Source of the DNA: Macrostomum lignano
Taxonomy: Eukaryota
NCBI GenBank assembly: GCA_002269645.1
Contig: NIVC01001484.1
Span: 279,134 to 343,133, forward strand
Length of the DNA: 64,000 bases
Direction of reading: 5' to 3'
The stretch's first letter is position 1; each line of letters begins with the position of its first letter. The notes below the pieces were generated by a model. That model did no database searches. It saw nothing but the letters and a program-made list of their open reading frames with translations, and was not told where the DNA came from. Below, one piece after another: positions 55,853 to 57,610 of the stretch. The position numbers and the translations under genes are program-made.

Positions 55853-56152
55853 CTATTGGTTGATAATAGACCGGACAAAGTCCTCGTACCGGATCTGGCC
55901 CTCCCCGTCGCAGTCGGCCTCTTTAATCAACGCGTCGACCTCTTCGTCTGTGAGTCGCTCTCCGAGTTGAGTTAGCTGGTTGCGCAGCTCGGAGGCCGAC
56001 ACCATGCCGCTGTTCTGCTTGTCGAACACGCGGAACGCCTCGATGATGGCCTCTTCAGTGTCGCGGGGCTTCATCTTCTCGGCCATGAGCGTCATGAATG
56101 TGTTGAGCTCGAGTACACCAGTCAGCTCGGAGTCGATCTCTTCAATGTACTC
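55853..56152 (-). CDS. Divergent calmodulin-like exon (EF2-EF4, 99 aa) with no exon 1 of its own; candidate alternative terminal exon of the upstream calmodulin gene
   Basis: [12 protein letters not shown]...[10 protein letters not shown]...[22 protein letters not shown] aligns without gaps (about 52/99 identical) to exon 56936-57235. AAG acceptor at the homologous position; an in-frame stop lies 4 codons upstream of the exon start. Confidence 0.85.
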
Positions 56153-56335
56153 CTTTTGTTTGGTTTATTGAATGGCAAAGTAGTGTGTTATTGGCATGAA
56201 TTTTATTGTCGATACACCTAATACTGTAGGCTTAATTGTGCACACCCCTTCTCTTCCATGCTACTTATAGTAATGCAACCAGTACAGGAGCGTACATCAA
56301 AGCTGCATGTATTGAAATACTGGTAGCATTGTACC

Positions 56336-56585
56336 CAGGATCGGCAAACTATAGGTCATTTCATCTATTGGGCCCTCGGGTCCTTTTGACACAATGGATA
56401 TGAAGATCTATTCTCTCCCCTCTTCTCTATTCCCTCATCCCTATCTTCTCATCTCCTCTCTCTCTCATTCCATCCACACCTCATCTCATCTTCTCTCCTC
56501 TCCCAGTATTCCTTCTCGTTTCGCTCTTATCTGCCCCCCCCCAGCCACGAGCTACGAGCATAGATTCTTAATCTGCCGACCCCTG
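56336..56585 (+). mobile_element. Short hAT-like MITE with a CT-rich interior
   Basis: Ends caggatcggcaaact / atctgccgacccctg; no 8-bp TSD recognisable. Confidence 0.7.
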
Positions 56586-56935
56586 TATCATTAGAAACTA
56601 CGTTGTATAAATTAATATACATTTAATACATCAGGAATGTGTATATGAAATCAGCGTTGAACTTAATATGCCTGAATTTAGATAAAACGCAATTCAGTCA
56701 ATTTTGGCTATTTTATGTTTATTGGAACAATCGATATATTATAATTATTAAAGATATTAGTAGATAAAAATTAGAAGCGGGTCAAGGCTGCCAAAACGCA
56801 ATTTATTGATTAGGAAAACAGGATTATCTGGTACAGCAAACAGAATTTAAAGATTTTATATATAGCACAAAAATGTCAAGTCTTTTAGTTCATTTTCGGG
56901 CGCGATGATATGGCGGACGACACGATAGATCGAGT

Positions 56936-57610
56936 CTATTTGCTGGTCATCATCTTGACGAACTCCTCGTAGTTGATCTGACCGTCGCCATCCAGATCAG
57001 CCTCGCGGATCATCTCTTCAACTTCCTCGTCCGTGAGTTTCTCGCCCAGATTGGTCATCACGTGGCGCAGCTCGGCAGCCGAGATGAAGCCGTTGCCGTC
57101 CTTGTCGAAGACGCGGAACGCCTCCCGGATCTCCTCCTCGCTGTCGGAGTCCTTCATCTTGCGCGCCATCATGGTGAGGAACTCCGGGAAGTCGATTGTG
57201 CCATTTCCATCCTGGTCAACCTCATTGATCATGTCCTACAATTGTGCAGGAAGAGGTGCATGGGGCTAGATTATTCCAGACATCTGCTGCTGTGTCCGCT
57301 TAAATCTTGACAATAACATGAGGACATGTGTACAATGCAGGACACAATCGACTTCGCCGGAAATTCCTTTCCATGCACCACTACACGGACCCATTCTGCT
57401 CGCTCTATATTTTGTATGCATGCTTTCTTAACTAAGTTCCATAGATTGGAAAATTCTCACCTGCAGCTCAGCCTCGGTGGGGTTCTGGCCCAGAGAGCGC
57501 ATCACGGTGCCCAGCTCCTTGGTGGTGATGCAACCGTCTCCATCCTTATCGAACAGGCTGAATGCCTCCTTGAACTCGGCAATCTGGTCCTCTGTAAGCT
57601 GGTCAGCCAT
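56936..57610 (-). CDS. CALM: Calmodulin (near-canonical, 149 aa), 2 exons
   Basis: complement(join(56936..57235,57461..57610)): [30 protein letters not shown]...[10 protein letters not shown]; four intact EF loops with a few substitutions (T->C in loop 1, A->Q in loop 2). Confidence 0.97.

Follow-up and report, generated by a model that had tools for sequence, protein, structure and literature searches.

Few eukaryotic proteins are as conserved as calmodulin, the functional diversity of which is, to our knowledge, attributed to separate calmodulin-like genes. Androcam of Drosophila, human CALML3-6 and FhCaM2/3 of Fasciola are calmodulin-like proteins that come from such separate genes, and some of the proteins of this kind act as light chains in unconventional myosins. 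The hybrid protein considered here resembles Androcam, CALML3-6 and FhCaM2/3 in its approximately 50–70% identity to calmodulin, its four EF-hand motifs, of which some have degenerate loops, and its altered Met-rich pockets, but these are whole-gene paralogues with an EF1 and a promoter of their own, whereas the hybrid would have its EF1, promoter and 5' UTR in common with authentic calmodulin. Among about 8 million papers searched in full text, none was found to describe alternative splicing that changes the protein product of a calmodulin gene.

Neighbouring exons that are homologous and agree in length and phase, as at the locus presented here, are known from Drosophila pip and PGRP-LC (PMC9013439) and from human tandem duplicated exon substitutions (PMC9741552), and, as in the tandem terminal exons among them (PMC9013439, PMC9741552), the two exons designated here as 2a and 2b are each preceded by a 3' splice site and each end in a stop codon, downstream of a common upstream exon. 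Unlike pip and PGRP-LC, however, the locus would swap two thirds of calmodulin between exons that are 52% identical, and it is known here from its sequence and a gene model. Flatworm spliced-leader operons (PMC8629364) are comparable as well, given that the units lie on the same strand, the spacer is shorter than 1 kb, the upstream gene is non-trans-spliced and the acceptor is in phase 0; the locus differs from the operons described for Macrostomum lignano (PMC8629364) in that its downstream unit is homologous to a terminal exon and does not make up a whole gene, there is no YTNCAG motif and the deposited model is cis-spliced.

Organization of the locus and its database models

The locus, a calmodulin gene on the minus strand with one first and two second exons, falls within a 64-kb window (i.e., the whole stretch of M. 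lignano DNA analysed, 64,000 nucleotides long), and the positions of its features are collected in Table 1. The exon coordinates, the homologous codon at which both second exons start and their equal 300-nt lengths, as put forward in a preliminary description of this DNA, were all verified by sequence.

Table 1. Features of the M. lignano calmodulin locus, in window coordinates.
Feature	Position	Strand	Remarks
CCAAT motif	58084-58088		read from sequence
Putative TATA box TATAAAAG	57703..57710	(-)	~95 nt upstream of the ATG; read from sequence
Exon 1	57461..57610	(-)	150 nt; ATG + 49 codons; helix A, EF1, helix B, to AELQ
Intron 1 (1 to 2a splice)	57236..57460	(-)	225 nt; 0 differences from the second genomic copy
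Intronic arm of the 31-bp RNA stem (CAUGGAAAGGAAUUUCCGGCGAAGUCGAUUGUGUC)	57341..57375	(-)	repeat search, pair I2
Exonic arm of the 31-bp stem	57170..57202	(-)	inside exon 2a; codes for part of EF2
Exon 2a	56936..57235	(-)	300 nt with stop: 99 codons + TAG; near-canonical EF2-EF4
Probable 3' UTR of the 2a mRNA	56690..56935	(-)	inferred cleavage site
Purine-rich insertion in the spacer	56338..56583	(-)	9-nt TIR-like ends GGGTCGGCA / TGCCGATCC; indel-rich between copies
Exon 2b AG acceptor	56153..56154	(-)	caaaAG/GAG; codon homologous to the 2a acceptor
Exon 2b	55853..56152	(-)	300 nt with stop: 99 codons + TAG; diverged EF2-EF4
First canonical AATAAA past the 2b stop	55301..55306	(-)	546 nt downstream; candidate signal

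The exon 1 donor (CAG/GTGAG) and the exon 2a acceptor (tgtAG/GAC) are both in phase 0. The acceptor of exon 2b, part of an AAG/GAG tandem (NAGNAG), is weak, its upstream tract being A-rich (6 pyrimidines in 17 positions vs. 13 in 18 for 2a), and it fits neither of the motifs reported for M. lignano (CAG in cis, YTNCAG in trans); the same acceptor position is common to GenBank entry PAA48296.1 and two UniProt models. Downstream of exon 2a, the AATAAA signal indicated previously near 56802-07 is real (56807-56802) and is accompanied by a second one at 56723-56718, while the sequence closer to the 2b stop than its first canonical signal holds variant hexamers only (AATAAG at 55792 and AATACA at 55754). 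A second genomic copy of the locus is found on NIVC01004186.1; the putative TATA box lies in the block over which the copies are almost identical, and this near-identity stops at ~56670.

An in-frame TAA is located five codons upstream of 2b, and the first in-frame ATG within it is codon 20; as 19 calmodulin-like codons precede this internal ATG and a stop lies upstream of them, an upstream start is needed. The earlier statement that the spacer holds no second exon 1 is supported: tblastn with the exon 1 peptide across the 64 kb matched 57610-57461 only, a blastn comparison of the spacer with exon 1 and its intron returned noise only and no exon 1 remnant, and a scan of the spacer detected neither an ATG...GTRAG phase-0 mini-exon nor an ATG/GT. 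Neither Rfam families nor a spliced-leader RNA gene were found within the window. The insertion in the spacer, taken previously for a MITE, does have TIR-like ends, but no second copy of it occurs in the window, and it could not be confirmed as a repeat family.

The joining of exon 1 to exon 2b, which had been proposed from the sequence, turned out to be exactly what is deposited as PAA48296.1 (BOX15_Mlig013024g1), a "hypothetical protein" whose model is derived from transcripts only: the annotation behind it combined StringTie/TACO assemblies with mapped Trinity transcripts, took its ORFs from TransDecoder, employed no ab initio prediction and cuts transcription units at spliced-leader peaks. 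We regard this entry as indirect RNA support, by way of a deposited gene model, for the exon 1 to 2b junction. The junction of exon 1 with 2a is present only in ab initio-like UniProt models, and, since the 1+2a product, though expected, is missing from the annotation that has PAA48296.1, that annotation is incomplete at this locus and could, moreover, be distorted by multi-mapping between the near-identical copies. An exact look-up among 15 billion proteins retrieved 1+2b alone of the locus products, and 1+2a, Met+2b and the ORFs of 80 and 98 aa had no exact match; the collection seems not to include transcript assemblies of M. lignano, and absence from it is therefore uninformative. Neither Mlig013024 nor calmodulin was found in the available supplements of Wudarski 2017 or in the available part of those of Grudniewska 2018, and a full-text literature search returned no mention of Mlig013024.

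The two terminal exons and their products

Exons 2a and 2b align without gaps, and the identity of ~52% given for them in the preliminary description is borne out by 52 identical residues out of 99, with 64% identity at the nucleotide level (67, 75 and 50% at the first, second and third codon positions, respectively). GC3 amounts to 0.83 in 2a and 0.79 in 2b, the G+C content of the spacer being ~0.38. Both second exons match calmodulin in a PDB search (E ~1e-37), a similarity that far exceeds chance.

Canonical calmodulin is taken here to be a protein of 149 aa with four canonical 12-residue EF loops and at least ~90% identity to animal calmodulin. The 1+2a product falls within this definition, being 149 aa long, 93–95% identical to many animal calmodulins over 99–100% of its length and endowed with four matches to Pfam EF-hand_1; the 1+2b product, also 149 aa long, is 66–69% identical to calmodulins and falls outside of it. 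EF1 and EF3 of 1+2b pass the Pfam EF-hand_1 threshold and EF2 and EF4 remain below it, with the EF2 loop of 2b having Thr as its last residue and, thus, no position-12 acid. The degenerate loops of 2b, the change from LGEK to LGER (K115R) and the loss of C-lobe methionines (M109L, M124L, M144S and M145I) are just as had been claimed. The four EF-hand motifs of 1+2b are arranged in two pairs, the core hydrophobic positions of EF2 are all still occupied by hydrophobic residues in 2b, and the AlphaFold model has calmodulin topology, in which EF1 pairs with EF2b (N-lobe pLDDT ~80).

The 1+2b product is a calmodulin-like hybrid and not calmodulin. It retains the calmodulin fold in the AlphaFold model and probably binds fewer Ca2+ ions, as its EF2 looks dead and its EF4 weak; the EF3 and EF4 ligands are atypical, and the C-lobe target pocket would be altered by the four lost methionines and by the replacement of Lys115 with Arg. 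The initial portrayal of this protein as a largely Ca2+-insensitive, light-chain-like isoform draws on the loop residues only; Pfam retains EF3, and kinship with light chains finds no backing among the PDB structures closest to the hybrid, the 60 best of 326 matches being calmodulins without exception. A weak database match of another kind (P0012), which is light-chain-like by our own reading of its sequence, has a stretch in common.

Routes to exon 2b

We consider, with moderate confidence, the locus to be one calmodulin transcription unit whose tandemly duplicated terminal exon serves as a pair of alternative last exons, yielding canonical calmodulin and the 149-aa hybrid that shares EF1 with it. 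The 300-nt terminal exon of a calmodulin gene would have been duplicated in tandem, presenting the single exon 1 donor (57461/57460) with two possible acceptors: use of the strong acceptor of 2a, the proximal one, with polyadenylation near 56700 would give the canonical 149-aa calmodulin, and splicing to the weak distal acceptor of 2b (56152), by which 2a, its 3' UTR and the spacer would be removed as a 1308-nt intron, would give the 149-aa hybrid with the same EF1 and diverged EF2-EF4. The homologous exons lie side by side, equal in length and phase and each with a 3' splice site and a stop codon, as expected of a tandem duplication; the upstream exon and its donor are single and shared, and the distal exon is devoid of a private first exon according to the tblastn, blastn and mini-exon searches. 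As to the isoform ratios, the role of the stem described below and the Ca2+ and target properties, we infer rather than observe.

An operon-like arrangement, which we deem unlikely although it is the chief competing explanation, would have the 1+2a transcript cleaved and polyadenylated and the read-through RNA trans-spliced at 56152 to the spliced leader, the AUG of which would be in frame because 2b starts in phase 0, resulting in a Met+2b protein of 100 aa. This alternative, raised already in the preliminary description, is biologically apt. M. lignano has a single spliced leader, which ends in ATG (CGGTCTCTTACTGCGAAGACTCAATTTATTGCATG); approximately 30% of its genes are trans-spliced, ~15% are in operons and 18% of the operons begin with a non-trans-spliced gene (PMC8629364), and initiation at the AUG of flatworm spliced leaders is documented (Cheng et al. 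2006, as quoted in PMC12582326 and PMC9851317). The repeat-adjusted spacing of less than 1 kb by which operons are recognized in M. lignano (PMC8629364) is seen here too, with ~540 nt separating the likely poly(A) site from the 2b acceptor, or ~290 nt without the insertion. Exon 2b is not preceded by an in-frame ATG of its own, and, once exon 1 has already been spliced to 2a, the 2b acceptor is left without a cis donor, which is the very condition for trans-splicing. The spliced-leader product would, however, have three EF-hand motifs with EF2b unpaired, even though 2b has kept the EF2 core hydrophobics with their predicted packing on EF1, and exon 1 and 2b are still joined in the deposited gene, although it comes from a pipeline that cuts at spliced-leader peaks; it is this odd number of EF-hands, along with the annotation not having cut the unit at 2b, that makes an operon less likely. 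Furthermore, an independent cistron needs no exact match to 2a in its 300-nt length and phase, and the 2b acceptor (ACAAAAG/G) is without YTNCAG, although the latter is weak evidence, as the motif is present at just 44% of trans-splice sites. The spliced-leader route to 2b could also coexist with the cis route and thereby add a third product to those of the calmodulin locus.

That 2b belongs to a separate gene, either with a promoter of its own and a short first exon that escaped detection within the spacer or beyond it, or with a start at the internal Met (MTLMAEKM..., 80 aa), is quite improbable. The first exon of vertebrate calmodulin genes contributes the ATG only, so an exon this tiny could be missed, the spacer insertion could carry a promoter and an ORF of 80 aa does exist at 55853..56095. 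The spacer, nevertheless, is free of ATG/GT and ATG...GTRAG mini-exons and exon-1-like sequence occurs nowhere else in the window, the 19 codons before the internal Met are calmodulin-like, high in GC3 and end exactly at the AG homologous to the 2a acceptor, and the transcript-derived model uses exon 1.

We would give very little credence to 2b being a decaying relic of the tandem duplication, with the 1+2b model depicting splicing noise on read-through RNA and no functional protein being made. The weak 2b acceptor and the lack of a nearby poly(A) signal (none that is canonical within 540 nt of the 2b stop) suit such a relic and count against alternative last exons, the lack of known 2b orthologues points the same way, and the degenerate Ca2+ loops also suit a relic. 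A search with 1+2b found no 2b orthologue outside M. lignano, HMMER with 2b against 1.84 billion representatives gave no match more than 51% identical (calmodulins and multi-EF-hand proteins dominated) and a metagenome scan with 2b returned distant EF-hand genes only, at no more than 47% identity over short segments; a word-index search with 2b missed a protein (P0169) that has all of 2b, and the negatives of that search are therefore weak. Neutral decay is, however, rejected by simulation (n = 20,000), in which the frame stayed open in 3% of the runs (P = 0.03) and none of the runs reached either the 52 identical residues or a GC3 of at least 0.79 that are observed. The divergence between 2a and 2b is unequal among the codon positions (33, 25 and 50; chi-square P = 0.011), and dN/dS of 2b against 2a is 0.41. 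Between the two genomic copies, all four differences in 2b are synonymous and none are non-synonymous (dN = 0; P ~0.002), next to ~3% substitutions in the adjoining spacer, and 2a shows a single synonymous and no non-synonymous difference; the low divergence between the copies may partly reflect gene conversion. The preliminary description had named a dN/dS near 1 as the mark of a pseudo-exon, and nothing of the kind was encountered: by these comparisons, 2b is a selected coding exon, and both last exons are under purifying selection, with the conservation of 2b resting on two near-identical copies because no orthologue was found in other species.

A single long protein, in which exon 1 would be followed by 2a truncated at ...NYEEF and then by 2b (241-aa UniProt A0A1I8IYR6), can practically be dismissed, as the two UniProt models from an earlier assembly that chain 1-2a-2b in this way (241 and 506 aa) were rejected as ab initio chaining artefacts: the donor required is TTC/GTCAAG and not GTRAG (found at 65% of donors), the 506-aa sister model leaves 2b at the homologous GTC, just ahead of the 2b stop, and then runs into unrelated sequence, which is typical of ab initio stop-avoidance, and the chained product would carry seven EF-hand motifs.

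A predicted intron–exon stem and the significance of probable alternative last exons

Exon–intron duplexes are known that guide A-to-I editing, as editing-site complementary sequences do, or that hide splice sites, and a 31-bp stem predicted around the 2a acceptor, which is new here, resembles them in being nearly perfect and in pairing a conserved coding exon with an adjacent, unusually conserved intron. It differs from editing-site complementary sequences in that its complementary element is upstream of the exon and the acceptor is enclosed, and it is known here from prediction. The ~138-nt loop would hold the branch region, the pyrimidine tract and the 3' splice site of 2a. The fold has a z-score of -5.4, the complementarity of the arms scores 56 against a shuffle maximum of 36, the MFE structure of a 791-nt pre-mRNA context contains 31 of the 31 stem pairs (mean pair probability of 0.88) and the chance expectation for the perfect 13-mer of the stem, with at most one mismatch, is 0.06 per window. 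Complementarity was scored locally against shuffles, as RNAduplex on whole exons and introns forces global duplexes and is uninformative, and neither exon 1 nor the spacer nor 2b showed any that was comparable to the stem. Covariation lends the stem no support, the two genomic copies having identical arms.

In PGRP-LC, RNA base-pairing has been implicated in exon choice (PMC9013439); systems of that type rely on docking and selector intron elements, whereas the stem proposed here pairs the intron with the proximal exon itself. Pairs between intron 1 and the region preceding 2b (I1, I6, I10 and I14) were also tried as docking/selector pairs and rejected, all of them being at shuffle background.

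The predicted stem may act as a switch for last-exon choice: when formed, it would mask the 2a acceptor, and 2b would be used. We put forward only tentatively, and think it rather doubtful as a whole, that the calmodulin gene has a built-in RNA switch by which a masked 2a acceptor redirects the EF1 exon to 2b in certain cells or conditions, so that a hybrid that binds less Ca2+, has a re-tuned C-lobe and competes for calmodulin targets takes the place of the main Ca2+ sensor. Such a switch would be flipped by conditions like helicase activity, editing, transcription speed or temperature.

These considerations concern one species, and the product in question has already been in GenBank, unnoticed, as a hypothetical protein. 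M. lignano transgenesis exists, which makes both the RNA switch and the competition between the cis and spliced-leader routes at one acceptor directly testable. Should the locus truly have alternative last exons, it would be a clean example of a tandem terminal-exon duplication turned into a new isoform and, as EF2-EF4 are swapped with EF1, the promoter and the 5' UTR kept, a natural domain-swap experiment bearing on lobe cooperativity and target selection; should the RNA switch also prove true, it would mean post-transcriptional control of the identity, and not the amount, of calmodulin.

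Two tandem, probably alternative last exons of one calmodulin gene

The arrangement reported in the preliminary description, a single calmodulin exon 1 followed by two equally long last exons, was confirmed, with both 2a and 2b being in phase 0, starting at the homologous codon and aligning without gaps; its readings of the EF-hand loop sequences, the LGEK to LGER replacement, the loss of C-lobe methionines and the AATAAA at 56807 were all correct on re-reading.

Coordinates of the calmodulin exons and associated elements (window positions)
Feature	Position	Strand	Remarks
Exon 1	57610-57461	minus	ATG + 49 codons, then GTGAG
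Stem, intronic arm	57375-57341	minus	intron 1, complementary to exon 2a arm
Exon 2a	57235-56936	minus	300 nt including TAG; preceded by pyrimidine-rich tract + tgtAG
Stem, exonic arm	57202-57170	minus	within exon 2a, codes 11 residues
AATAAA motifs 3' of 2a	56807 and 56723	minus	read from sequence
Exon 2b	56152-55853	minus	300 nt including TAG; preceded by A-rich tract + caaaAG

The two last exons share 52 of 99 residues and 64% of nucleotides (67, 75 and 50% by codon position), with a GC3 of 0.83 in 2a and 0.79 in 2b (spacer G+C ~38%), and the tract upstream of the acceptor holds 6 pyrimidines in 17 positions for 2b versus 13 in 18 for 2a. The 2b acceptor (56149-56155) is a tandem AAG|GAG (NAGNAG), the second AG of which would keep the frame and delete Glu51. 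Codon 27 of exon 1 (57532-57534) encodes Cys in this animal calmodulin, a residue otherwise seen, among the aligned database matches, in plant-type calmodulins.

Elsewhere, minisatellite arrays of 14-111-nt units are dense across the window (e.g., 3626-4736, 5622-6969, 16341-17550, 45625-47230 and 49696-50577; 51 TRF rows at a score of at least 200), and many of its long ORFs are translated repeats. The ORF at 35422-36786 (+), a mitochondrial PheRS-like exon, encodes a class II phenylalanyl-tRNA synthetase core and an FDX-ACB anticodon-binding domain, its 5' part overlapping a 27-nt tandem repeat.

Routes to a 2b-containing product

Searched against proteins, 2b had one exact match, PAA48296.1 of Macrostomum lignano (BOX15_Mlig013024g1, 149 aa, annotated as a "hypothetical protein"), which is exactly exon 1+2b, and whose contig, NIVC01004186.1 (L001), carries a second copy of the locus (DNA ~96% identical). 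Since the GenBank gene models for that assembly derive solely from transcript evidence (StringTie and TACO RNA-seq assemblies, mapped Trinity transcripts and TransDecoder ORFs, with units split where spliced-leader or poly(A) reads peak), the deposited model implies an assembled transcript with an exon 1 to 2b junction, which counts as indirect evidence for that join; the expected 1+2a product is absent from the same annotation, which is therefore incomplete at this locus. The best explanation, and a reasonably probable one, is that exon 1 would be spliced to either 2a or 2b as alternative last exons.

Unlikely, if realistic for this species, is a spliced-leader cistron, in which trans-splicing at 56152 would give an in-frame, 100-aa Met+2b product: the single spliced leader of M. 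lignano is 35 nt long with ATG at its 3' end, trans-splicing affects ~30% of the genes, operons (repeat-adjusted spacing of <1 kb) contain ~15%, and in 18% of operons the first gene is not trans-spliced (PMC8629364), and flatworm spliced-leader AUGs are able to initiate translation according to passages in PMC12582326 and PMC9851317 relaying Cheng et al. 2006. This route is ranked below cis-splicing because PAA48296.1 joins exon 1 to 2b in spite of the cutting at spliced-leader peaks; because a Met+2b protein, with its three EF-hand motifs, would leave EF2b without a partner, whereas those of 1+2b form two proper pairs; because the EF2 core positions are all still hydrophobic in 2b (M51Y, I52, V55I, I63L, F65L, F68, L69M, M71L, M72, M76) and AlphaFold packs EF2b on EF1 (normal calmodulin topology for 1+2b, pLDDT ~80 in the N-lobe and 61-75 in the C-lobe); and because the exact match to 2a in length and phase is a requirement of exon substitution. 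Both routes could coexist, as an exon 1 already joined to 2a leaves a read-through 2b acceptor with no cis donor, the stated condition for trans-splicing (PMC8629364). The next gene 3' of 2b (~47300-53050, +; L001 14566-20588), which according to the public annotation encodes a 618-aa protein with a JmjC/JHD domain, is convergent, and any operon here would therefore be limited to calmodulin and 2b.

That 2b has its own first exon or an internal start is improbable: as previously described, no second exon 1 lies between 2a and 2b, none being found by tblastn of the exon 1 peptide against the whole 64 kb, while blastn of the spacer for exon 1 and intron remnants gave only noise, and the spacer contains no ATG|GT and no phase-0 ATG...|GTRAG mini-exon. 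An in-frame TAA lies five codons upstream of 2b, the exon has no internal ATG before codon 20, and no private first exon was found; its first 19 codons, which are calmodulin-like, therefore need a start that splicing provides, whether from exon 1 or from the spliced leader.

Still less probable is that 2b represents a relic or splicing noise, and the check for a pseudo-exon came out against one. Between 2b and 2a, Nei-Gojobori dN is 0.41 and dS ~1.0; when the observed number of substitutions was placed neutrally on 2a in 20000 simulations, the open frame was kept in 3%, and 52 identical residues or a GC3 of at least 0.79 were reached in none. The two genomic copies of 2b differ at four sites, all synonymous (P ~0.002 under neutrality), whereas the adjoining spacer differs by ~3% substitutions plus indels; exon 1 and 2a show one synonymous difference each. 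On these results 2b is a genuine coding exon.

Two 'Calmodulin' entries from an older M. lignano assembly, UniProt A0A1I8IYR6 (241 aa) and A0A1I8IZG5 (506 aa), string together exon 1, a 2a that ends just short of its stop codon, and 2b (the 506-aa entry likewise truncates 2b ahead of its stop and continues into unrelated sequence); with GTC codons serving as donors, they are probably ab initio prediction artefacts, and a fused long protein can practically be dismissed.

A candidate splicing switch and a near-identical block

The two stem arms are predicted to pair over 31 bp, interrupted by two bulges and a small internal loop. The stem contains a perfect 13-mer, for which, with up to one mismatch allowed, 0.06 occurrences per window are expected. 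The predicted folding energy of the 206-nt segment is -77.6 kcal/mol (shuffles, -53.6 +/- 4.4; z = -5.4). Its local complementarity score is 56, the highest value among shuffles being 36, and by the same scoring exon 1, the spacer, 2b and the flank 3' of 2b stay at background level. All 31 pairs recur in the MFE structure of a 791-nt stretch of pre-mRNA (mean pair probability 0.88), and both arms are identical in the two genomic copies. The ~138-nt loop holds the 2a branch region, pyrimidine tract and 3' splice site, with part of the exon sequestered, and the stem would, as proposed here, mask the strong proximal 2a acceptor, leaving the exon 1 donor free for the weak distal 2b acceptor. This candidate 2a/2b switch, new in the present analysis, is inferred from folding predictions; alternatively, the stem may be an ADAR editing duplex, the shape of which it fits over its 11 exon 2a codons, or a neutral inverted micro-duplication.

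Window 57900-56670 and L001 9700-10940 differ by two substitutions in ~1230 nt, a block spanning the promoter, exon 1, the 225-nt intron 1 (no differences), 2a and ~265 nt of 3' flank, whereas its own flanks differ by 3-5%. Such a block points to gene conversion, which may contribute to the low inter-copy divergence, or to strong constraint acting on the calmodulin transcription unit as a whole, and its stopping ~265 nt 3' of 2a suggests a 2a mRNA end near 56700, past the second AATAAA.

Novelty and predicted properties of the proposed hybrid

Tandem duplication of terminal exons yielding mutually exclusive last exons is known, e.g., in Drosophila pip and PGRP-LC (PMC9013439), which this calmodulin gene resembles; full-text literature searches found no description of alternatively spliced calmodulin protein isoforms and no paper on this M. 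lignano gene, the 1+2b product being already deposited, unrecognised. No 2b orthologue was found in 5.8 billion clustered proteins, 1.84 billion representatives or the scanned metagenome collection, where Macrostomum is poorly covered, and a word-index search with 2b gave 13 candidates and missed a database protein containing 2b at 100% identity (P0169), so that its negatives for short queries are weak.

Pfam EF-hand_1 has four matches in 1+2a and only EF1 and EF3 in 1+2b. The EF2b loop is very probably inactive, given that the acid at position 12 is gone and positions 3 and 5 are Glu and Thr; EF3b has Gln at position 3, and EF4b has Glu at position 5 with Asp at position 12, a combination that usually goes with weaker Ca2+ binding. 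C-lobe changes in 2b comprise Met109 to Leu, Met124 to Leu, Met144 to Ser, Met145 to Ile and Lys115 to Arg. The splice-switch interpretation of the preliminary description stands in part, the exon 1 to 2b join being present in PAA48296.1 and 2b being a selected coding exon, whereas its 'light-chain-like' label is an analogy and not membership, the nearest solved structures to 1+2b (best 60 of 326 PDB matches) all being calmodulins. Judging from the replacements in 2b, a hybrid that would be less sensitive to Ca2+ and would select different targets is plausible.
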